From Penicillus capitatus (taxonomy: Eukaryota; Plantae; Chlorophyta): a stretch of 64,000 nucleotides of DNA. Numbering within the stretch: the stretch's first letter is position 1; each line of letters starts with the position of its first letter. Location of the stretch: NCBI GenBank assembly GCA_965649825.1, contig OZ287718.1:1-64000 (forward strand), in the 5' to 3' direction. Shown in pieces: positions 15,926 through 63,200 of the stretch. Position numbers and translations under genes: made by a program. The notes beneath the pieces are model-generated. The model made no database searches. It had not been told where the DNA came from and worked only from the letters and a program-made list of their open reading frames with translations.

Positions 15926-17852
15926 TTAGACGCCTGGATGGCATCCAGATACGCCTGCCATTGAGGAAAGGACACCGTGCGTTTTTTGCTGCGTCGTGCT
16001 GGAATCTGTGAGGCTTCTTGCTGCTGCTGCCGCTGCTCTTGTTCCTTGTCCGTTGACTGATTCGACTACAACACACCACACCACAGATGCAAGACATGTC
16101 CATGAGCACAAATGCTGTTGACCACTGCCACTCTTGGAGGCTTTGGAATGTGAGATTCGGTATGGGCCGCCGCCGCCGCCGCCGTGTCGGATGTTTCAGC
16201 CTCTTGAATGGTCCGGGCTTGGGAGGATTGCTGCTGCGAATGCTCGGGTTCTGGTTGTTGCTGTTCTGGTTGTTGCCGTTGAGTTTCTGCACTTTGTTTT
16301 TCGTTTGCGGATGGGAACATACCGCGCAATGAAAAGCACCCAGTATCACTCAGATCCGCCGTTGTGACGTCCGTTGTTGTGACCGTGTCCCCTTCACTGA
16401 AGAGCACATCTCCAGATGAGGTGGCCGTGGTCGCCGTATGATGGGTCATGGCAGGTATTCCCTTATTCGCAGCAGGTGATGGTCCGCCCAGCATCGCCTT
16501 CAACATGGCAGTGATCTCTTTAAAGGTAGGGCGTTGCTCGCGATGTGGATGCCAACATCGCCGAATTAATTCTGCATACATTGGAGGACAGTATTTAGGT
16601 ATTTTTGGTCGATGCCCTTCCACAATGGACACCATCGTTTCACCAGAACTGAGACCTACAGCAGTGGAGTGAGGGAGAGATGGCCAAGGAAAGGGAAATG
16701 ACCTAAGAAGGGCAACTCGCCAGCCACAAGCTCCCACAACAGCATCCCAAATGAAAAGACATCCACAGCTGGAGTCAAGATGCCGTCTTTGAGAACTTCT
16801 GGAGGCATGTGGCTCACGGTCCCAGCCGTGAAAGTGCTGATGTGTGTCTTTATGTGTGTTAAGGGTCGACTCATGCCAAAATCCCCAACCTGACACACAC
16901 CACACCACTCCTTTCCAAGATGTCAGGCAGAACAGGCGGCGGATGACCTTGCAGACGAAATTCTTCGCAAGGATCTGTGAAGAGGACAGCATCACGTTCT
17001 GCGATTTAAGATCACCGTGAATAATTCCGTAGGAATGCAGGTGCTCAAGAGCATCGGACACTTCCAATGCTGCAAAGAGAAGGTGAAGAATTCTCGGCCG
17101 TTGCCGATCCGTATCTTCAAAGAACTCTCCTTTCTTGATGGCATCACGTAAAGAGCCTTTGTTACAATACTCCATCACAATCCAGATCTCTTCTGGTCCG
17201 TCACTCAAATCCTGAGCCATATCGCTGAAGAGACTGGAAGAAGTGCGTCGTACGCCTGGAGACGGCGATTCGTAGGTACTCATATCCTCCTCAACAACAT
17301 CGGTACATCCTTCGAGGGCCGAATCGCTGCCGACGTAGACACCCAATACTTTGACGAGATTAGGGTGACGAATCCTCTGACCCATGTAGAGCTCGAGAGG
17401 CTCCGTTCCAATCTTGATCAGATCTTCTTGCTGTCTCAGAATCTTGATAGCGACGTCTTGGGAAGCCATTCGGCCGCGATAGACCGTCCCTATAGAAAGA
17501 GAGATCTGCCACCTTGCCCTATTTATTCCTTTGAACAAGTCCTACCCGATGCGCCTTTTCCCAACGTGTTGCCAAAAGTGACTTCATGAGGATTCACTGT
17601 TATGGGCGATGCGTTGTCCTCCATGTCCAGCCCATGCTTTATGACATGCCTGTGGCCTCTGCTGGGATGCGGCGTCCACTGCATTTCCACATCGTCAGGT
17701 CGTGGCAGATCCGAACAACAGGACGATGCATAATCAATTCGTTCCGAGTAAAGCTGTTCAAAGTTCTCCAGGTGTTTGTTTTTTCGGCCAGGACTTCGGT
17801 GTCGCCGAAAACCAAATTTCTTTCCGAGACCTCCAATGCCACATCCAAACAT
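15926..17852 (-). CDS. Tyrosine-kinase-like (MAP3K/Raf-like) Ser/Thr protein kinase with low-complexity C-terminus
   Basis: LGKGASG, VAIK, HPNLV, IIHGDLKSQNVML, VGDFGMSR, GTVSHMPPE, DVFSFGMLLWEL and CWHPHREQRPTF occur across spliced exons. The 3' end is approximate. Confidence 0.92.
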
Positions 17853-30377: not shown

Positions 30378-33300
30378 TCAGTTGCCCAGATTTTCATCCA
30401 TTTCCGATGCGAAAGTGACGGACCTTGTCATCTCGAAGGCATGGTCTCGAAAGGGAAAGTGCGAATTCGAAGAGGACGGCAGAAGTCTAGGAGGTGTCGT
30501 CGAGCACCGGGCGATCGGAGATTCCGGCGAGATGGCTTCCAATCGAACAAATCCTCCGTTCCGTGCCGATCGTGTGAAGCTCTCTTCTGTCGATCGAGGC
30601 GGCCGTCCTTTGGAATAGCGTGCTCGGAGACGCGAAAGGCCGATGCTGATCTTCGATACCGTCTTCAGTTTTCCGACGGCAGCAGAATGATGGAAAGGAT
30701 GCGATCCGCTGTGGAGTGTGTGTAGAATATCTTTCTTCCTTTTGGACAGGATACCACCGGCGGCTTTGCGATCTTCGAGTCCAGGATCTGGGCCGCCGTT
30801 TCGGATGCGTGCCTCCAGCATGTCTGCCGCTTCATCGTTTCCGGCAGCTCGATACATCTCGGAGATGAAGGCCACAAAGAATTGGCGATCGTCGGAGGGG
30901 GCAATGGCAAGCCACTGTGCCATGGGAGCATAGTCTCGCCAGTTGAGGATCTCCATCAACGGCAACGGCGCCACTTTGTTGCTCAGGTAGAAATTCCGGT
31001 ACAGATTTGTGGCAAAGTCATTGAATTTGTCACGAGTGGCATCATTCGCCACGGCAAGAAAATCAACCAACTCTGGAAAACGATCGACGAGCTTTCTCCA
31101 GAACTTAGCGATGGGATCCATCGACAGGTAAGACGTCTCGGACTGATCCGACATATAATCCTTGAGCATGTTCGTCAGTCGATCCCACTTCTGAATAAGG
31201 GTCGGGTCGTTTCGGATGCTCTCATACACAAACCGAGGATTAAATGTATCCAGAAGCTCATAGCTGATATTGTTATCTGTGAACTTGAGTGAACTGCTGA
31301 TGGATTTCAGTGCGGTGGGGCTTGTCATGAGACTGAAGAAACTGTTCATGGGCCCAAAAGACTTGTTGGCGAATTTGTGATGCTCCTTCTGGAGAAAACG
31401 AATGTGATACTTCTTCAAGACCTCCATCAAGAAGATCGTCGCAAAGACGATCGTGAGCACGATCATTGTGGCGATGACACTCCACTCGAGAATCTCACGA
31501 TCGGCCTCAGGGAGGTTCTCGCTGTAGAACATCAGTCCACTAAACGCTTCGCACATAAGGGCCACCAGCAAGAAACTGAAGAGCACATCGAGGTACGTAT
31601 CTACGTAGGGGGCCGTATAGACGTGAATCATGAGCGAGATGATGGCCAGCAGTGCCAGGGTACCGACTTGGAATGCTGGATTGTTCATGTACACAAGCAC
31701 CAATACAAAGAAGAGCTTCCGCGCCATCACGATGGCAGGAGTGAAGGAGTAATCCAGCTCATACTTCTCATAGATGAATCCATAGCGTCTCAGATTCCTT
31801 GGACTGGAGAATGCCGATCGACAACTGAGATCGTAGAGCTTCCACGACATGTAAGCGGGATAGCCAACGACGTAGAAGATGATTCCGAGAACGGATAGGA
31901 CGACCAGAGCGTCATGATCTGAGTTCTTGCTGCATTCGACACCGGGATCGACTCGGAGGACATGGGCACCAGCGATATCCTCGCACTTGAAGACATCGAA
32001 ACAGTATTTGGCAATCGTGACATACATGATATCGACCGACGCCAGGAAAGTCGCCATCGTGGCATCCCACTTGCGCACCAGATGCTCTTCGTTCTTAGGC
32101 ACGTCGACAAAGATGGAGAGGATTTCGCGGCGGCGGCTGTCGATCTGAAGCACTCCGTTTTTGACGAGAATATACGCGATGGAGGAATTGAAGTATCCAC
32201 TGGCTGCGAGGAAGGACATAATGAATGGAAGGCAGAGTTGGACGATGAAGTTCTGACGGAATCCCCACTCGAAGAGACAGCTCGGCTCGAGAATGTCCAC
32301 ATCGAAATCCAAAATGTTCGCTGCACCGAAAACTGTCGTCACCTTCCCTGTCCAGTTCAGATTAATATCGCCGATAATGTTGGCCAACTGTGCCCAGGCC
32401 AAGATCATCTCCAAAGAGGCAACACTTCTTGAGACGATGACATTGATCACGTACCAGCCAACCAACAGACTGATGCTCAACAGGACGATGAGTCCCGAAT
32501 TGAAACACTTGTGGCACTTTTGGATGATACTGAAGTAGCCACTCTCACACTCAGAGCACAACCTAAAGGGCACCCAGAAGCACGTGAGGCTAAACGATGG
32601 TCGTGTGGTGTCTAAGGGTACCGTCCGGTGTAGCCAGTGGCACAGGCAAAGTCATCTTCTCCTGTGCAGACGGAGGCGGGATCGCATGGGTATATCTCGC
32701 CTCTGTGCTCAGGATGAGACCAGTAGCCAGGTTTGGGACGTGGGGCAGAGGTGTCCCCTGCACATTCAGCTCCTACGGGACAAGGCTTGCATGCCTCCCC
32801 TGTCACCCCATCGGCATTGTAGTATCCAGCCTTGCAGATACAATCCACGATTCGCGTTCTCCTTCGTTCGATGGTATGTGTCCCCTCTGGACAAGACTGG
32901 CATTTGGACTGAGCCCGTTGGCCATTCCATTCACCAAGTGGACAGCTGTCGCAGTGTGCGGCATTGTATGCGTCAGACCATTCTCCTCGATCACATGGCT
33001 GGCAAGGTTCAAAAGGATCAGCCCCGACAAAGTACCCTTTCTGGCAAATCTCTCTGTAATGGTTCTCGGCTGGAAAGGTCGGCAGTACAGTGGCATACTG
33101 CACAGGCATGACCGGTTCAATGATTCTCGATTTATGACCACTCAGCAAAGTTTTTTCGAAGACTTGTGTCGTCACCGTTTCCAATCCATCATTGCGCCCA
33201 AAGTAGTTAAACTTCACTCGACCGAAAAACGTCTCCATATCCAGATTCCAAAGGGCATGGATGACACGATCGTAGCCTCGCTTGTCTTGTCCGTCATCAC

Positions 33301-34402
33301 ACGAGACAGCCGATGCGTTGTAGAGGAGGACATCAACATCTCCATCTGTCTTGGAGATATCACAGGAACGAAAGGCGTTGCGAATGGCCTGCGTTAGAGT
33401 CACGCCCACAGCCGAAGCAGCTGCGGCGATTTGGGTGGGCAGTTTCTGTTTGAAACGATCCTGGTAAACCTCTGCGTAATCCATCGGCGTTCCAAAAAAA
33501 CTGTCTCTGTATTTCATTTCCTGATGCCATTGAGTGGCACTGTAAAGATGATTGGCACGAAAATGCGGCTTGAAAGAATCCACCCACTCCTGTTGTGTCG
33601 GACCCGTGGTCAAAAAGAAAGACTTAAGCGGATAGCGAATATCATGGAATGCATCCACGAGTTGTTTTCCATCAGTCGGATGGACACAAGCAACAACCAC
33701 ATCCACCGAGTCATTCCTCGATTGCATTGCCACCTCTTTGAAGTAATCAGCCGCCGCGATCTCTGGACGGAACTTGTAGATGAATGTCAGATCATCATAT
33801 TGCCTGAAGCTTTTGGATTCTTCAAAGTATGAAACGGCAGCTTCACATGTGGTTCGAGTCAATATGTCATCTTCGTCATAGATGATGGCCACCGATCCGA
33901 TTCTGCTCAGGAGAATTGCCCGAACAAAATTCTTTGTGTATTCTTTATTCGAGGCCATGATACCAAAGGCCGTTCGGTAAGAATTGTCATAGAAAACGTC
34001 AGGCTCCACGCAACACTGGTAATTCACGATACCTTCCTGATCGGCCAGACGCATTTCTTCTTTGGCATATTTCGTATGAGAACCGCCAAGAAAGTGTATC
34101 CTCTTCTCTTTGATGAGGTCCGACACCAGATTCGTGTGGATGTCTGGGTCATCTGTGTCATCTTGCCACAGCACTGAGTAGCGAAAGTGGAAACCCGGTG
34201 TTCCAGGTTTGCCTTCTAAGTAGAATCCCTGTCCGTCGTTTTCTCGATTCACTTTTTCGAAGTAGAGTTCGTATCCGTTCTTTATTTCGGCTACTTCTTG
34301 TGTGCGACCGTCGGAGTGCAAAACAGCTCCAAAACGAAAAGAGGAATCGCACCAAACCGTTACAACGAATAGGAATGCAAAGACGGCGAAGACAAAACGC
34401 AT
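30378..34402 (-). CDS. Receptor-like membrane protein (1321 aa): signal peptide, type-1 periplasmic-binding/Venus-flytrap domain, GCC2/GCC3 (ephrin-receptor-like) Cys-rich repeats, about 8-9 TM helices, cytosolic tail
   Basis: Exons 34402-32622 and 32562-30378, joined by a 59-nt intron, give 3966 nt in frame. LivK-like features: FRFGAVL, GYELYFEKVN, FYDNSYRTAFGIMAS, YSATQWH, AAAASAVGVTLTQAI, METFFGRVKFN. CxxCxxGxW/Y repeats follow. The TM block includes YGFIYEKYELDYSFTPAIVMARKLFFVLV. Confidence 0.9.
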
Positions 34403-47577: not shown

Positions 47578-49516
47578 TCACGATTTCTTCAGAAACGAGT
47601 CAATAAAAGCCGAATCTTCCGGTCGGAGATTAGACCTGTCCACTTTTTCCATGACTTGACGGGTGATGTCATTCGGGGCCACGCGGTTCTTCTGCATCCT
47701 CCGGATGAGATCGAGAATCTCTTGAATGGGATGATCGTTGTTCACGAGGCCCTCCAGCAAGGTGGTGTAGGTAACAACCGATGGCCAGTTATTGTCCTCA
47801 CGCATGGTTATCAGCAGTCTCATAGCACGCTGTTGTTCGCCGACAGCAACCCAGACACGAATGATGGCGTTGTAAATGTAACTGTCGAATTTGATGCGAT
47901 GCTGTTGCATTTTGACCACAAGGCTGTTCACCATGTCTGCATTCTTAGCTCGGAAGCACGCGTTGAGGAGAGTAGCAAAGACATAGCTGTCCAGTTTCAT
48001 CTCCTGACTCTCCATCTCATTCAGAATCTGTAAACAGGGCTCCAGATAGGTCAGTCCATCAGCAGGATTTCCCAGCTCGATGTAGAGCTTCATGAGGTTC
48101 GTGTAGGTGAACACCGTCAACTCGACACCCTTCTCCTTCATTTCGTTGAACAGACGAACACCCTCATCCAAGTCTTTCAGCCACAAGCACAGCACCAGGA
48201 ACTGACTGCAAGTAAAAGTGTCGGGCTTGCAGCCTGACTCTTGCATCATTTCCAGCACTCTTCGGCATTCTGCATAGACATTGGGTTCGTGCTTCTGTTT
48301 CTTTACTGCCTGAACGTAGCTTCCAATGATGCAGTTGTAGATAACCGCAGTGGGCCGAAGGCCTGCATTCTTCATGTCTTCATAGAATACCCAAGCTTGT
48401 CGCCAGTCTCCTGCTTTCATAGCACAGCGTATCAGCAAGGAAAGTGAACGGTAGGATGGCCTGATGTACAACGCCTGCATCTCATGGTAGAAGTTATTGA
48501 CATAGCTCATGCTCTGCTTGCCGTCTGAGAAGAGTTTAAAGAGCATGTCATAGGTACCAGAGTCCATTGCTCGTTGATGATGATGTTTCATGAGGTTGTA
48601 CAGAGCCAGGACATTGTTAACATCTCCTGCCTCGTAGTAGACGGTCATGGCTGCACCATAGACAGGCACGGTGGTACGAATGTGACGATTCTGCATGTCA
48701 CGCAGGAGCTCGGTGCATTTCTCGGCTGCCTTATGCGGTCCCAGGTCCATGAAACGGCATCCACTGATCAAAGCACCGTAGACAGCTGGCTGGGGCTCCA
48801 TTCCCGCAAGCAACATTTCTTCAAAATAGAACATGCCTCTTTGAAAGGCACCGCTCCGAACGCAGGCATCGATCACCGTCGTATAACCATATTGGCTTAT
48901 CTTCAGGCCCTCCGTCTGTTTCATCTCCTGAAAGTAATCCTGTGCCATTTTGGCGTCCTTGAGCTGGGAACAGGCATGCATCACTGTGGTGTAACAGTAC
49001 TCATCGGGAAGAACTCCATTCCTTTTCATGCTTTCAAACAGACCCACTGTTTGACGGTATTGCCTCTTCGCATTCGTCTTTTTCATCAATCGGGAGTAAA
49101 AGCGACATGAAGTCTCCAAGCCTGCTGCCTCTCTCTCTTCCAAAATGACCATTCCTTCCTCTACGGTATCAAACTCAGCATTGCGACTAAGCCGCTGGAC
49201 GACACTTGTCTTAGCCTACACACAATCTCCGTGATCGTCATACAAATCTGCAAAGTAGAATAGTGAACTTGAAGCGCCGGCGCTAACTCGTCTTGGGCTC
49301 TTTGCCTTAAGGTGACATTGAGGGACCGGTCGTTGCCCACAGCATTCTTGTCTGCGTTTTGCACTCGAATGGCGACATGTGATCTTCGCTGCAGTTGAAA
49401 GTTTCCTTCGTTCTTCTGCAAGATGCAAAGATGGATCTTACGGCTATATGATAGAGGGAGGAACTGCCGAAGCGTGTGTCGATGCAAACCCTGGGACGGA
49501 CTGCCGACGACAACAT
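47578..49516 (-). CDS. P-class pentatricopeptide-repeat (PPR) protein
   Basis: A 524-aa uninterrupted exon with about 12 tandem 35-aa repeats (YTTVMHAC, YTTVIDAC, YGALISGC, YGAAMTVY, YNCIIGSY, YTNLMKLY, YNAIIRVW, YTTLLEGL). The N-terminal exons are approximate (candidate start MLSSAVRPR at 49516). Confidence 0.9.
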
Positions 49517-49596: not shown

Positions 49597-53094
<3,498 letters not shown>

Positions 53095-53679: not shown

Positions 53680-55280
53680 TTACAGATAATCGTCCACATT
53701 TTTGGAAAACCCAAATCTCGTAAAGTCTTCGTCGTACAGCTGGATGACAGCTTTGATCAGATCTCTCGTATAGTACTCGCGGATGATGGATTTACTGTCG
53801 GCATGAGTAACCGGTTTTGGTTTATTCCTCCTTATAATGTGCTCATCCTCTGCGTACAGTGACGATGTGCCATTAACTCCCCAGCCATATGCTCCAAGCT
53901 TCTCCCACAGTTCCACACTGTCCAGAAATCCATGCATGTCTTCTTGGCGTTCTTCATAGCGCCCGATGAAATCGTAAGGCAATGTGCGAACACCACAGAG
54001 TGCCGACTGCGGACGAAAGTGCCGATCCGTCCAGTCCAAATGGCCCCTTGCTTTGGCCCCTCGCATCTTTTCCACAAACTGCTTAAGACTTGGAGGATTG
54101 GATCCTTTGGGCCAGCCGCCAGGAATGCGCATGTACTCATGAAGGTCAATGATTTTGGATCGGTACCCAGAGAGCAACCGGGTGATCGGATTTCGCACCA
54201 ACATCCCTTTCGCCCACTGCGTATCATCGAAGATACGGATCATGTCTTCTTTCCCTTCGTAAGTCCAGTTGTGTCCTGTATGGAAATTGCGGATCTGAAC
54301 TGTATTGCTCTTTTTCCAGTCCTTAATGCCATTCATCCGACGCATCAGCAACACAGCCACAGAGCTGCCGACCTTGGGAACACCACAGTAGGCCACTTTG
54401 TCCTTCACACTCTTGAAGGATGTATCTTTGATGGTCGCAAAATCAAAGAGCGATGGACTGTTGAGGCCCCATGTGTCTGTCGATTCGCATGACCATCGCG
54501 TTCGGCCCTTGATCAAATCTCCAGCCCGATGCAGTATCTTTTCCAATCTGGCGGATTCTGCCGTCCAGTTTGTTTCCCTGCCAACATCTGTCTCGTCCAC
54601 GTCCACTGTAATCTTGCGATTGGAACAGGGCCACGGATCCGTGCCGCTACGATCGACCCACATGGCACGTACGCCTCTTCCCAATGCATCCACGACTCGC
54701 ATCCGCGTTGCATCGCAGTTTGTTGTGTAGCAGAGAAACACGAAATCCGATCCGCGGAATTTCATGAAATACCGCTGCTTGCGCAGCAGATCGACGGAAT
54801 TGTAGAGTCCCTTCTGTGTATACAAGACGGATTCAAAGATCGGGACCAGAAACAGCTGGGCGTCTTTCACTTCACGGACACGTCGTGGCGACTCGAAAAG
54901 AAAGGCACAGAACTCGTTGGGCACATAGGTCTGACAGTCTGTCAGGAACTTTTCTTGGGAGTCTCCCAGCAGCCCCTCGCGTGCCAAATCCACCAGATAG
55001 AAAGGAAGCGTGGTATCTCGTCCACTCCATTTCAGCTGATGCACTTTCACTTCACGATTCTCAGTTGAGATCAGCTGCTTCGTAGGGACGCTGTTAACAA
55101 CGCCAGTATCCTCTGAAAGCGACAGAACAAACATCGATTGATATATCCATGGTTGCTCAGGGCTCACTTACTGCTTTGGAATCCGGAAGAGCTCAATGCT
55201 TTACCGAGGTTAAGATAGAGAAAGCCAGACACAATACAAAAGAGCAACGCCACGATGCCGTTCTGAAACGTCAGCCGCAT
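53680..55280 (-). CDS. Type II Golgi membrane protein (502 aa): truncated exostosin/GT47-like domain fused to a carbohydrate sulfotransferase (Sulfotransfer_2/CHST-like)
   Basis: Exon 55280-55205 (MRLTFQNGIVALLFCIVSGFLYLNL, TM anchor), a 92-nt intron, then exon 55112-53680. PAPS motifs YCGVPKVGSS and LVRNPITRLLSGYRSK, plus HFRPQSALC...YDFIGRYEE. The N-terminal part FLFESPRRVREVKDAQLFLVPIF...RYFMKFRGSDFVF...RKITV is exostosin-like. Confidence 0.88.
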
Positions 55281-56005: not shown

Positions 56006-56902
56006 TCAGTAGTATCCCTCTTCGCCTGACGCCTCCCCTGGTCTCTTTGCAGATTTCTCTGTACCCCAGAGCTCCAGAGATGTCAGTTTCGTCAGCTCAG
56101 AGAGATGCTGCAGTCCTTTCCATGTGACTCTCGTAAATCCGAGATTCAGTCTCACCAAATCTGTCAGCTGAGCGAGGTAGGCAACGCCTTCATCTCCAAC
56201 ATGCGTATTCCATAAACTCAAGCGCTGCAGTTTTCTGAGACTGGGGAAATGACGAGCGCCTTCGTCTCCAATGTCCGTCCGGTCCAAATGCAGAGATGTC
56301 AGATTTGTTAAACAGGCAATATGTAACATGCCTGAGCTTGTAATCTTGGAATCTCGTAGATTGAGAAATGCCAGTTGTCGTAGTCCACTCAGAAACTGTA
56401 CACCTTCGTCTCCAATATCCGTTTCCCACAGCTGCAATACGGTTAACTTCGTTAGATAAGCCAGATGCTGCAGACTCTGGTTGTTAATCGCTGTGCCTGC
56501 GATATCCAGCAATGTCAGTTCTCTCAGACGGCTTAACATGAAGGCGTCACGCGAATGCAGTTTCCACACGACGAGCGATTGCAGTGCTGGGAAACGTCGC
56601 GTCACGGTGTCCAAGGGAAGGGACGAGGAGCCAAATTGAGTGACGGCTCTATTCGAAATCGATAGCTTTGTGGTAAGGGCATCACAGGCGTGTTGCCAAT
56701 GTTTATTCAACAAACGAAGCTCTGGAAACTGACAGCGGTCCACGTGGCGTGCTAAGCAACGAATGATGTCTTTGTGTAAGGATTCCCACTCTCGATACTC
56801 TTGTTCTACCTAAGGTCGCATGTCAGGTCACACATTTCGGCAAAGGTCACACACGACGTTCTTCTGCCGGTCCCAGTGCTTGGCTTTCCTCGATAAAATC
56901 AT
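56006..56902 (-). CDS. F-box-like/LRR protein with about six 24-aa RNI-like leucine-rich repeats
   Basis: Spliced start MILSRKAKHWDRQKN-VEQEYREWESLHKDIIRCLARHV...LRLLNKHW (F-box-like). Repeats LxxLxLxxTxIGDEGxxxLxxLxx. Confidence 0.82.
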
Positions 56903-58097: not shown

Positions 58098-58930
58098 TTT
58101 GCGTCAAGAACGACAGTCACAATGATGGACGGTGCAATGCCAGTGTCTGCCGATGCGTTGATGCGTTTCTTATGCTACGATACCAACCGACGCATCGGAG
58201 AGGACGGACGGCTGCATGCAGAGACACGTAGACGTGTCGCTATCACTCATTACCGATCTCAATCAATCTTCACATCCAGCTCTTACATAACACTTGCACA
58301 TGTGTGAAATGTAAAGATGCGTGAGTGTCTCTATGCAATAAGAGTGAGATTTAGGACTCAAGAATCGGGACTCGATTTCGCAGACGGTGGCCGTTCTGCC
58401 TCGCCTTCGGGTTCTTCGGCTGTGAGATCGATAAGCTGTGCTTCCGCAGACATGGCTTCATTGTTCGGATCCTCCACTTGGTGTGTGGACTGGGCAAGTT
58501 CTGTCTCCCTCGTCTGCATCGATTTTTTTAGAGAACTGCACGAGGGATGGATGGACTGTGCTTGCATTGGCCGTGTTGCCGGGTTGCATCCGGTCAGAGA
58601 CGTTCTGGCTCAACTGCGTGGCCAACTGCGTCAGCTGCTCGATTTCTCGTGTGCCTAACAATGACCTCACTCTTTTCAACGGGTCTTTTCACGCGTCCCC
58701 TCACTGCTCTTGATTTCTTTGGCTGCTTTGGCATAGTCTCGTTTCTTGCCACTCTCTATCTGTCATCGTCACTACCCTCGGATACACGTGTGAGAAATGC
58801 GTTGTTGCCTTACTAAAGCGATATGATTTGCCAAGTTCTCAACGAGCGATTCGATTCTGCACCACGTACCAGTCAAGTCCATTGTTTCAAACAATACCTA
58901 CATACGGTTTTGCATACGGTCTTTCGGAAC

Positions 58931-60016
58931 ATGTTGCGTACCGGGGTGCTTGTGGTGGCCTGTGCCGCCGTTGTGCATCGACTCCAGCGACTCTCCATCG
59001 CCTCTACCAAGCGCAAAGCCAATGATGGTCGCCTCATCTCCTCTCCAGACGAGACGGGAGCACAGGCATTTGTGGTCAACAGCCAGAAGAACGTGGAACT
59101 CTACTGTCGTCGTTGGGGCTCTCCGTCTGCCTCTCCGACTGCCGCTTTCCTTCTGTTCCACAGCGAACTGCTGAGCGGCACTGTCTTCAAGCGTTTTGCC
59201 CAGAAGATGATGGACAAGGGATATGTGGTCTACGCCATGGATTTGACCGGCTATGGAAAGAGCGGATGGCAACGGGGGATACCCTCACACATCGAGTGCT
59301 ATACGGATTACGTGGACGACATTGCTGCGCTGGTGAAGGTGGCCAAGCGAGAGACAGAAGATGTGCCCATTGTGATGTATGGAGAGGGATTAGGAGCGAC
59401 GTGCGCTTTGGCTTACGCTCTGAATGACGCGTCCAACGCAGCCAACGTGGATGCTCTTATCGCCGCTTCGGCAAAACTGCAGCCGGCCATCTCAACGGAG
59501 AGAGCGGAGCATGGCATCTACGGTATTCTTTCCAAGATTCTCCCATCCTTTTCCGGACCACGCGAAGATCCACCTTACGATATTGCTGGCCTTTTTGTCG
59601 ATGCCGAGATCGGCATGATCGCCCGGAGCAATTTTGAGAAGTGAGAAATGAATAGCATCTGACTTGAGAGAGTGAGACGTGGACGGATCCCTTCCTTCCT
59701 GTTCTTTAGTTTGCAGCCCGCTTCACTTCAGAAGATTCGCGAAGTTGCGAAGATGTGTGCGTTCGTTCAATCGCACATGACAGAACTGACCGTTCCATTG
59801 ATGGTGCTGCACGGCAAGGACGATGTCCGGAACGAGATGAAATTCTCAGAAGAGCTGAAAATGAAGGCAGGATCGATTCAGAAATACATACGTCTGTATC
59901 CTGATGCCGTCCATGGTCTGCTGTACAGCATTCCTGCCACAGTGGACAGAGTCATTGCCGATATCACGGCTTTTGTTGACAACATCATCACGACTTCCCC
60001 GCGTCACACTTCATAG
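58931..60016 (+). CDS. Alpha/beta-hydrolase of the monoacylglycerol lipase/caffeoylshikimate-esterase family, nucleophile Ser replaced by Gly
   Basis: LYCRRW, GYVVYAMDLTGYGKS, YVDD, MYGEGLGA (canonical GESMGG), LMVLHGKDD and YPDAVHGL. One intron near 59641-59709. Confidence 0.85.
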
Positions 60017-60202: not shown

Positions 60203-63200
60203 ATGAAGCGTATCGGCGAGAAGATTACGGCCTGGAAGGGTCCAAGTGACCACAAAGCTCTGTTCTCCAACAAGCCCAGTATTCTGAAATTTGCACCGGG
60301 GGTATGGACACATAGCGGATTGCCAGAAGCGTCCGACGCCTTGGCCTACGAACCCGTGCAGCGTCTCCTTGCTGTACGATCAACACAACAAAGGCCAACG
60401 TCTGTATGCTATGCTGTCGTTGCCAGGTGGGCACCCAAGACGGTCGCGTCAAGGTCTTTGGTCAATATGGAGTGGAGAGTCTCTTGTCCAGTGCCCACAC
60501 AGAACCGACGGCATGTCTGGCCTTTTTACCAAACTCGGGGGCATTGCTCAGACTCACTCAAGTCTTGTCACCGTACGGAATGCATTGGTGCTGATATGGG
60601 TTGGCTGTTTGGATCAGAACGGAGTGCTGGAATTGTTTGATTTGGATACACAAAATGTCACATCACTCATCGAGTTGAATGATGATCCAATTACTTGTTT
60701 GTCATTGATCCCTGGCCAACCTTACATCATGCTCGGCACCTTCTTGTCAGCTTCCTTCATCCATGATGATGCAGGACGTGTGCAGGATGTTCTTCGGGGG
60801 TGTTGCGCGTCTGCTGCATCACTGATGTCAACAGAGATCCCATCACACAAGCACGGCCAGTCATACATCTCAGACTGCTAAACTACAGAGGTCCGTCACA
60901 TCAAATGCACGAAACCTGTATCGCAAAAATGCATGTATGTGTGTTTTTGTGACCTCAGTTTCGAAGCACGCGTTGGGCACTGGAGGAAGAATGATGGACA
61001 TCTCTGTGTGTCTCACTTCTTGTGGCCCGCTCGCTCTTATGCTGCACGGGACATCGGGCGTTCTTGTGTGGAATATTCGGTGAGAACCCCTTCGGCCATT
61101 GCGTTCTGTCTCTGAGTCAGTGATCTGTCGTGATCCAGATTCTCTCGACCCGTCTGTTCCATTCCCAATGTCTCATTGGACGTGCTCGTGTCGGCCAAGA
61201 TCCAAGATCCGGGTGAGGTGACATGTGCATCGTGGATTGGCAAACGCATTTCTCCCTATCTCTTGGCAACGGGTCACACATCTGGTGATGTACTGACGTG
61301 GTCCATGCCTGAGGAACTGCGTGGATTTAGCGATCGAAAAAGAATGACTATGCCTCAGATCGTCCATCGATTCCTTGCACGTCCCGATCACTCTTTGCGA
61401 AACCAGATCACTTCGATGTCGTACATTTCTGGAACAGAAGATCAGATCTTGGTGTTTGGTGGACAGTCCTTGGAAGAGCCAGCTGGGCTAAGCCTCTTTT
61501 CTCTGTCGAGGAATAGACAGGAGGAGCAATCGGAACATGAATTCGTGACAGCTCCACACTCGAGCCTGGCATGGTTTGGGAACATCCTGGATTATGAATT
61601 GGTACCGCCCAAAGGTTCCATGGAGCAATTCGATGATCCGTTGGGCATTCTGGTCCTCACAGAAGACGGAAATCTTGTCGTGCACGATCTGCAGCTGAAA
61701 CAACCCGTTCCGTTTTCCATGCCCTTTCAAATCTGCCACAAGCAATGCTCTGCCTCGCTCTTTTTCAAACCGTTGGTATCTTCTCCGCTCGTGCGGTTTC
61801 TGGAGTCAGTGGAAGATCGGAGTGCGGAATTGATGGAAGATATTGGAGGCATCTTCGATCATGCGTACACTTGGATTCTGGCTGGAGGCACGGCGGCAAC
61901 GAGCATCCGGGGATCGAATGCCAGACATCCTCTGCTGGTTCTTGGCTACGAAGATGGACGCATGCGTTTCTGGAGTCTACTGAAACCGTCGCCTCTCTGT
62001 CTCTATGTATTGGATCTCGCCGAGAGTTTCTCAACAGCTGCTGTTAAGAGCTTAGAGATCTTGGACGAAGGGACGTTTCTGGTGGCAGGCGATGCAAAAG
62101 GACATGTGTTGGTGTATCAGATCTCGGATGTCTCTCGAACCGTGAAGGTGCGAACATTCCGTGGTCCGGCTCAACCGCCAGAGATCGAGGAGCAGAAACA
62201 GAAAGCTGGGTATCAGCTTCTGCTCTGCCTCTCGCTGAATTCGAATCCCATTCAGAAAATCGCGTTCCATCCAGAATCTCATTTTCTGGCTGCCCTGGAC
62301 AGCTCTGGCGACATCAGTGTGCTCAATTTGATCACTTTGGAATGCGTGTTCATCCCCTTCGCTTCTATGAAGAGTCAGCACTCTATTGTGGATATTGTTT
62401 TCTGTGAGGCTCCTCTGTCTCCCCGAGAACAGGAGTCGCCCATTGAAGTGGCACTGTTCGTGGCGGATGAAGCATCCAATCTCACGGCAGTGGATCCCAC
62501 TTCTGGAACGATGATGAAGGAATCGGATTGGCTGCACCCCAAGAATGAGAGCAAAACTGTACGACTGATGACATTGGATGAAAATGGCATCTGTCCTGTG
62601 ATCTCCACTTTCCACCTTGGAGGATCGGATGCATTCTTCTGGACACCTGTTGACACCCTTGATGAGGACGGTAGCCACGCCGCTGAGTCATCGCAGCGTA
62701 GGATTCTTCGCAGAACGCCGTTTTAAGGACTGTCATGAGAATACAATATTTCCTTGTGTGCAGCGAAGACAGAGGATCTGATTGCATCCAAAGAAGATGC
62801 GCTGTCAGAAGGGGCAGAGAAGAGCACAGAAGGACAGGAAGCATTGAACAGCAGGTAACGCATGTGTGAGGATGCTCTTGGAGTGTATGTATCCTCCTTA
62901 CAACATTGCCGCGATGTATAATCGACTGGTCCAATGATGATGTGTGTCTTTTGCAGGACCACTTCGGAAGCAGTCTCTGTCGAGATCGAGTCTGGACAGA
63001 CTGGAACAACAACGACAGGCAATGGGTATACACATCATGAGCGTTTCGTCTCGGACGACGCAGAGACGGATGCGCTGTTGGCAGCTGCTGTGGCCAAGCT
63101 GGATGAGAGACCCGTCGAAGCGCAGCCAAAACCGCGCAAAGGTGGAAGCACCCATGCACTTCTGCAGATCATGATCTGTTTCTAGGACTGGGCCCCTTCA

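Follow-up and report, generated by a model that had tools for sequence, protein, structure and literature searches.

The 64,000-nucleotide (nt) stretch of DNA analysed here, hereafter the window (positions 1 to 64,000 of contig OZ287718.1 of Penicillus capitatus), carries a two-exon gene on its minus strand. Its predicted product joins a membrane anchor, an N-terminal domain that is remotely homologous to the acceptor-side lobe of family GT47 (exostosin) glycosyltransferases, and a carbohydrate sulfotransferase domain. An earlier, sequence-only reading of the window had placed the gene at 53680–55280, which is exactly the extent of the coding sequence, with the ATG at 55280–55278 and the stop codon at 53682–53680; the spliced product of the two exons has 513 amino acids (aa). 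The parts of the gene and of its product are the following.

55172–55280, minus strand: exon 1, aa 1–36 (MRLTFQNGIVALLFCIVSGFLYLNLGKALSSSGFQS), 109 nt, phase 1; ATG, coding sequence and GTAAGT donor conserved in contigs L001 and L002.

55203–55259, minus strand: predicted type-II signal anchor or transmembrane helix, aa 8–26 (GIVALLFCIVSGFLYLNLG), the top 19-residue Kyte–Doolittle window (mean 2.08).

55113–55171, minus strand: intron, GTAAGT...CAG, 59 nt; splice sites conserved in L002, interior less conserved than the exons.

53680–55112, minus strand: exon 2, aa 37–513 and the stop codon (53682–53680), an unbroken coding block for stem, GT47-like N-lobe and sulfotransferase domain.

54466–55008, minus strand: N-domain, aa 72–252 (about 180 aa), remote homologue of the N-terminal Rossmann-like lobe of GT47 (exostosin).

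54985–55002, minus strand: motif FYLVDL, aa 74–79, aligning with GT47 'KIYVYDLP' (first strand).

54835–54864, minus strand: motif DAQLFLVPIF, aa 120–129, aligning with GT47 'EAxLFxVP'.

54736–54756, minus strand: motif RGSDFVF, aa 156–162, aligning with GT47 'GGRDH(I/V)'; GSDHVF in the wider family.

54604–54633, minus strand: motif WPCSNRKITV, aa 197–206, aligning with GT47 'C(F/Y)xPxKD(I/V)V', the last N-lobe strand.

53704–54405, minus strand: Sulfotransfer_2 domain (PF03567), aa 273–506, E=5.1e-29, profile positions 8–252 of 252.

54361–54378, minus strand: 5′-phosphosulfate-binding loop PKVGSS, aa 282–287; P, K and both S invariant in homologue alignment A1.

54169–54189, minus strand: 3′-phosphate-binding motif PITRLLS, aa 345–351, fitting PxxRxxS; P, R and S invariant.

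54004–54027, minus strand: DRHFRPQS, aa 399–406; D and H invariant across the wide family.

The main open reading frame (ORF) of 495 codons (53680–55167, minus strand) opens with VSPEQPW and lacks a plausible start codon; in the raw sequence, in-frame stop codons lie just upstream of it, and the ATG at 55280 opens exon 1 in another frame. A GTAAGT at 55171 and a pyrimidine-rich tract with a CAG ending at 55113 bound a segment of 59 nt, excision of which joins both frames in phase 1. The ATG, the coding sequence, the GTAAGT donor and a YAG acceptor are all kept in the two independent metagenome-assembled contigs, L001 and L002, whose proteins are 99% and 84% identical to the window product, respectively, and synteny around the gene is conserved in both. 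A nearer alternative GT donor at 55204, which keeps the frame in the window, was rejected because the GT is absent from L002, which reads GGC. The sequence-only reading had placed all three parts of the protein in one reading frame; this holds for the GT47-like lobe and the sulfotransferase domain, which share a single exon, but not for the transmembrane anchor, which lies in a separate exon and another frame, beyond the intron. The locus is best explained as a nuclear gene of the expressed type, belonging to a siphonous green alga that resembles the Bryopsidales. This lineage has very short introns, of 59 nt in the window gene (GTAAGT..CAG) and of 47 nt in L004 (5005–5051; GTGAGC..TAG).

The sulfotransferase domain scored 102.6 bits against PF03567, for which the gathering cut-off is 22, and all eight close homologues match the same profile. 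The PKxGS(S/T)-type 5′-phosphosulfate-binding (PSB) and PxxRxxS 3′-phosphate-binding consensus of carbohydrate sulfotransferases has been described (PMC11625862), and with PKVGSS and PITRLLS both present the domain is, as had been proposed, an intact CHST-type sulfotransferase carrying both motifs for the sulfate donor 3′-phosphoadenosine-5′-phosphosulfate (PAPS). D399 and H401 of DRHFRPQS are unchanged even in paralogues at 25–31% identity, and His401 is the candidate catalytic base. An AlphaFold2 (AF2) model, computed from the exon-2 translation with a 28-sequence alignment, reached a mean predicted local distance difference test (pLDDT) of 87 and a predicted template modelling score (pTM) of 0.89; a run with an 8-sequence alignment gave a pLDDT of 39 and was discarded. 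In this model the C-terminal part has a sulfotransferase fold with pLDDT mostly above 85. Foldseek searches against the viral models of BFVD returned sulfotransferases with E=1e-5 to 1e-3 and a probability of 1.0, including 'Carbohydrate sulfotransferase 8-10'; against the PDB the whole model gave only weak sulfotransferase matches (best E=0.07), with NDST1 among the fold matches. HMMER searches of PDB sequences, made with the whole-protein profile, both N-domain profiles and the metagenomic homologue P0029, found no sulfotransferase of solved structure. The predicted activity is PAPS-dependent carbohydrate sulfotransfer, for which the substrate would be a polysaccharide.

Next to this domain, the N-domain carries a GT47 signal that becomes significant only at the level of the family and of profiles. 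On the whole window protein, the Pfam profile PF03016 (Exostosin_GT47) scored 16.1 bits (E=0.007), and on the isolated window N-domain 18.6 bits (E=0.0013, profile positions 18–118 of 293), both under the gathering score of 33.4 bits; taken alone, these scores amount to a lead and not yet to a finding. Scanning of 26 N-domain segments singly revealed PF03016 matches in nine (best E=5e-6), and no other Pfam family matched more than two. Among these, metagenomic P0029 and Ostreobium P0031 each match PF03016 on their own (E=1.4e-5 and 2e-4), in the same part of the profile each time.

Profile–profile comparison with hhalign was carried out against GT47 clade E (ExAD-like) sequences from a published supplement (PMC5371791), 19 in all (11 chlorophyte and 8 charophyte). 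The N-domain profile of the window clade (alignment A2) scored 41.2 (probability 73.7%, P=2.9e-5) and the 26-member profile (A4) 43.7 over 117 columns (79.3%, P=1.6e-5), a 13-member subset reached 50.0 (89.3%, P=2.1e-6), and the pair P0029 and P0031 reached 54.3 (93.1%, P=3.2e-7). Reversed templates scored at most 21.9, and 40 column-shuffled versions of an earlier 11-sequence template at most 20.0. Against the 11 chlorophyte GT47 sequences only, the comparison was suggestive (P=1.3e-3, probability 18%), and adding the eight charophyte sequences raised the probability to 74–93%. The four GT47-type motifs listed above are co-linear and in register over about 120–170 columns. Together they span the whole N-lobe, whose first strand carries the first motif and whose last strand, just ahead of the inter-lobe linker, carries the fourth. 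W197, C199 and R202 of WPCxxR are invariant in 26 of 26 N-domains; R185 is also invariant, and six cysteines are conserved. These results identify the N-domain as remotely homologous to the N-terminal, acceptor-side lobe of GT47. The earlier proposal of a GT47-like N-terminal half is upheld as to homology and amended as to length: the domain spans about 180 aa, a whole N-lobe, and not about 130.

The second half of a GT47 enzyme, the C-terminal lobe that binds the nucleotide sugar, is absent, as the sequence-only reading had stated. A pattern search of the protein found neither FCxxPxG nor GC[IV]PV, and hhalign against a template cut to the GT47 C-lobe gave P=0.42. Across the family, Pfam GT47 matches end at profile positions 118–158 of 293 and never beyond. 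The sulfotransferase domain begins about 20 aa past the N-lobe, and in the AF2 model some 35 residues separate the long helix at the end of the N-domain from the strand that bears the PSB loop. This short spacing cannot accommodate a donor lobe; the protein therefore falls outside GT47 and, lacking that lobe, should have no glycosyltransferase activity.

In the AF2 model the N-domain shows five strands (model residues 8–10, 57–62, 94–98, 121–124 and 137–139) alternating with helices in a beta-alpha-beta arrangement, with pLDDT mostly 85–95. With a pTM of 0.89 for a chain of two domains, the predictor seems to set them in a defined mutual orientation, and the packing of the N-domain on the sulfotransferase domain appears to be rigid. 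Comparison of the window gene with its 84% orthologue in L002 gave ratios of non-synonymous to synonymous substitution rates (dN/dS) of 0.22 for the N-domain, 0.15 for the sulfotransferase domain, 0.20 for anchor and stem, and 0.18 overall; both domains are under purifying selection.

An exhaustive HMMER search of 1.84 billion representative proteins with the N-domain profile matched 23 proteins, none of them a full GT47; on this profile the window protein scored 276 bits and the Caulerpa homologue P0006 scored 274. One match, P0011 (1,726 aa; profile positions 40–77, E=6e-19), was rejected as a low-complexity false positive, being rich in Gly, Asp and Arg, with 16 near-identical repeats and no Pfam domain. 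Nine of the remaining 22 extend past the N-domain, and all nine then carry PF03567. The other 13 come from unannotated assemblies, in which they were called as short ORFs. One of these, P0024, was checked: its N-domain is followed by a 47-nt intron and then by an in-frame exon that encodes IPKTGST and Sulfotransfer_2, so this 'N-only' match is an exon fragment, and the other N-domain-only matches are probably exon fragments as well. A word-index homologue search with a 14-sequence profile returned nine proteins. The joining of the two domains is thus no annotation artefact, since both lie within one exon and both are kept in every family match that extends past the N-domain.

The architecture is kept among deep paralogues of Bryopsis, Caulerpa and Ostreobium at 21–31% N-domain identity. 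We propose a family 'GT47-N-lobe + Sulfotransfer_2', marked by FYxxDL, AxLxxVP, GSD(H/F)VFxC, WPCxxR and NRWxC followed immediately by PF03567, all of which the window protein has. Its named members are g4271, g4272 (adjacent gene numbers), g4896 and g579 of Caulerpa lentillifera; GMH39671, GMH39692, GMH39799 (these three on one contig) and GMH42627 of Bryopsis sp. KO-2023, whose records say hypothetical; and scf_1490.2 of Ostreobium quekettii. A survey of the architecture in ulvophyte and other algal proteomes had been suggested with the sequence-only reading. In the protein search made here the fusion recurs, and every named member belongs to the order Bryopsidales, with no named match outside it in the 1.84-billion-protein search. 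The domain combination has so far been found only in Bryopsidales. The origin from a green seaweed that had been supposed agrees with these named homologues, although the proper context is this siphonous order and not green seaweeds generally.

Two features of the family's genes may be added. The family has expanded within lineages: the adjacent numbers of the Caulerpa genes g4271 and g4272 suggest tandem copies, and the three Bryopsis members that share a contig lie on BSYQ01000006.1 (L003; 6.7 Mb) as BSKO_07569, 07590 and 07697. In P0024, which belongs to subfamily B and comes from the same sample as L002, the 47-nt intron falls exactly between the GT47-like lobe and the sulfotransferase domain, some eight residues ahead of the strand bearing the PSB loop, a position at which the window gene is uninterrupted.

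At its N terminus the protein has a single Arg ahead of the hydrophobic segment of aa 8–26, and a corresponding anchor is present in P0004 and P0006, two homologues from Caulerpa. The remainder of the protein holds three N-glycosylation sequons (N-x-S/T) and conserved cysteines, which is consistent with a lumenal body behind a type-II signal anchor. A location in the Golgi would fit this topology.

Elsewhere in the window lie the following genes.

16066–17538, minus strand: protein kinase.

30378–34402, minus strand: two adjacent large ORFs, one with ANF_receptor/Peripla_BP_6, NCD3G and Ephrin_rec_like domains (ligand-binding part like that of class-C G-protein-coupled receptors), the other resembling a transient receptor potential (TRP) channel.

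47578–49152, minus strand: pentatricopeptide repeat (PPR) protein.

51031–52869, plus strand: DNA gyrase subunit A (DNA_topoisoIV and DNA_gyraseA_C), in several ORFs split by introns.

56006–56743, minus strand: leucine-rich repeat (LRR) protein.

58823–59644, plus strand: alpha/beta hydrolase (Hydrolase_4).

61176–62726, plus strand: WD40-like protein.

The genes flanking the sulfotransferase gene are unremarkable nuclear genes for an alga. The gyrase A gene, the product of which is presumably targeted to an organelle, stands tail-to-tail with the sulfotransferase gene, an arrangement that is syntenic in L001 and L002. The ORF pair at 30378–34402 may be one gene, and such a receptor–channel arrangement would be unusual for a green alga. 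Within the 64,000-nt window there is no paralogue of the sulfotransferase gene and no carbohydrate gene cluster; the neighbours are not related to carbohydrates, and the gene therefore stands outside any biosynthetic cluster.

In glycosyltransferases of the GT-B fold, the acceptor is contacted mostly by the N-lobe, whereas the nucleotide sugar is bound by the C-lobe. We propose that the gene encodes a type-II, Golgi-lumenal, PAPS-dependent carbohydrate sulfotransferase that would act on a wall polysaccharide. Catalysis would be carried out by the C-terminal Sulfotransfer_2 domain, in which Lys283 (PKVGSS) together with Arg348 and Ser351 (PITRLLS) would hold PAPS and His401 would serve as the base. 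The N-lobe would derive from the acceptor-side lobe of a GT47 enzyme that lost its donor C-lobe and for that reason could no longer transfer sugars, and the PAPS-binding domain would occupy the place that the sugar-donor lobe takes in a GT-B enzyme. An acceptor-binding or a docking role of the N-lobe, as put forward in the sequence-only reading, is plausible, and the lobe may, as also proposed there, guide regioselective sulfation. The reading we prefer, with a probability of roughly 0.55, is that the N-lobe, itself non-catalytic, binds glycan and extends or shapes the acceptor groove of the sulfotransferase.

Several observations weigh against this reading. PF03016 stays below its gathering score in every member of the family, with a maximum of about 25 bits against 33.4, and the GT47 profile used in hhalign was drawn from a single clade, clade E. 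HMMER profiles searched against PDB sequences found no EXT1, EXT2 or EXTL3. In the Foldseek search of the PDB with the whole model, EXTL3 (8og1_A) is the sole glycosyltransferase among the top 50 fold matches; it appears at rank 49 with E=1.3 and a probability of 0.41 over 136 columns, a match that does not distinguish the GT47 from the GT64 domain of EXTL3. In place of the GSDH of the wider family and the G(G/R)DH of GT47, moreover, the window clade has GSDF; the His is lost in this clade only, so that constraint has been lifted there from one or more of the ancestral GT47 motifs.

An ancestral GT47 that acted on a wall polysaccharide may have had its nucleotide-sugar lobe replaced by a sulfotransferase domain, with the GT47 acceptor site re-used to sulfate the same glycan. 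We put this domain swap forward tentatively, as possible rather than probable. The junction intron of P0024 fits an origin by exon shuffling and is no proof of it. If the swap is true, the donor module of a GT-B scaffold would have been exchanged in nature, and in one subfamily an intron would still show where the two parts were joined.

The main rival to a glycan-binding lobe is that the GT47-derived N-domain is only a structural, oligomerisation or docking module, engaged in a Golgi complex with glycosyltransferases or in dimerisation and making no contact with the acceptor. A precedent exists in EXTL3, whose N-terminal GT47 domain has been reported to be possibly inactive inside a large dimeric assembly (PMC10570366); the six conserved cysteines and the invariant WPCxxR could be purely structural, and the loss of the GSDH His in the window clade points the same way. 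The pTM of the monomer model, on the other hand, suggests that the N-domain packs intramolecularly on the sulfotransferase domain instead of offering a free docking surface, and no partner gene lies in the neighbourhood. The N-lobe dN/dS of 0.22 is compatible with either role. We consider a pure scaffold less likely than a glycan-binding lobe.

Both an acceptor-binding and a scaffolding lobe presuppose descent from GT47, and the N-domain could instead be an unrelated, lineage-specific Rossmann-like domain whose likeness to GT47 is convergent or a coincidence of short motifs (a hydrophobic strand with Pro, Gly-x-Asp). In favour of coincidence are the Pfam scores, all under the curated cut-off, the PDB sequence searches without an exostosin match, the non-significant structural match to EXTL3, and the consensus of the 26-member N-domain alignment, which does not match PF03016 because a Cys-rich subfamily dominates it. 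Against it stand the single-sequence PF03016 matches of P0029 and P0031, the recurrence of that family in 9 of 26 members where no other reaches more than two, profile–profile P values down to 3e-7 with decoys at background, and four motifs in the same order and register along the lobe. A chance resemblance is now unlikely.

Last, a decaying or chimeric locus (a pseudogene, an assembly join or a read-through of two genes), in which the fusion would be functionless, was suggested by the lack of an in-frame ATG near the 5′ end of the main ORF and by the raw-sequence stops between it and the anchor, but it is already effectively refuted by the 59-nt intron with conserved splice sites that accounts for the stops and the change of frame, by the same structure and synteny in two independent assemblies, by the overall dN/dS of 0.18 and by recurrence of the architecture in at least four genomes.

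The window protein shares with animal Sulfotransfer_2 enzymes (CHST8-14/HNK-1ST and HS2ST) the PF03567 domain and the motifs PKxGS(S/T), PxxRxxS and D-x-H-F-x-P-Q, and it is predicted to have their type-II topology. Animal CHST-type enzymes have a short stem between anchor and catalytic domain, whereas the window protein has a folded, apparently GT47-derived lobe of 180 aa there. With the GT47 exostosins (of the plant ExAD, MUR3 and IRX10 types, and animal EXT1/EXT2) it shares the N-lobe motifs in order; these enzymes are type-II Golgi proteins, as the window protein is predicted to be, but they keep the donor-binding C-lobe (FCLxPxG...GCIPV) where the window protein has its sulfotransferase domain. 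EXTL3, which combines a GT47 domain (the N-terminal one, possibly inactive) with a GT64 domain (PMC10570366), offers a precedent for a GT47 module kept in a non-glycosyltransfer role beside a second catalytic domain; it differs in retaining both GT47 lobes and in having a glycosyltransferase, GT64, as the partner, and its fold match to the window model is not significant. In animal NDST, a deacetylase–sulfotransferase, and in a sulfotransferase–alpha/beta-hydrolase fusion of the brown alga Nemacystus (PMC6418280), a polysaccharide sulfotransferase is joined, as here, to another module from its own pathway. The partner domains of those fusions are others, catalytic in NDST, whereas the partner in the window protein is half of a glycosyltransferase fold.

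The four Caulerpa lentillifera genes have been catalogued as membrane-associated sulfotransferases (PMC7554865). The text of that paper contains the word 'exostosin' 0 times and mentions no exostosin- or GT47-like N-domain. By our comparison g4271, g4272 and g4896 belong to the same family as the window protein, at 47–54% identity, and g579 to a deeper subfamily. When the searchable literature was examined for exostosin or GT47 in combination with sulfotransferase and green algae, no account of the fusion came up, and the only algal sulfotransferase fusion returned was the brown-algal one with the alpha/beta hydrolase; a prior description of the family, which would have counted against the sequence-only reading, is absent from that record. 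Existing pipelines annotate such proteins only as 'Sulfotransfer_2' or 'hypothetical protein' because the N-lobe lies under the Pfam threshold. The carbohydrate sulfotransferase is of a known type; the accessory GT47-like lobe appears to be new and evolutionarily informative, so far within one order.

Caulerpa, Codium and Bryopsis make sulfated galactans, arabinans and mannans that matter both commercially and ecologically, and we know of no green-seaweed polysaccharide sulfotransferase that has been biochemically characterised. A 2024 review lists the algal sulfotransferase candidates as putative sequences from Pfam profiles only (PMC11625862). The family described here provides a small, lineage-specific and expanded set of candidates for the sulfation of green-seaweed polysaccharides. 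The accessory lobe is built in and can be deleted or swapped, so that acceptor recognition becomes directly testable. For enzyme evolution, the family represents an unusual survival of half a GT-B fold beside a different transferase, and its significance would rise if the N-lobe proves to be a re-used acceptor site.

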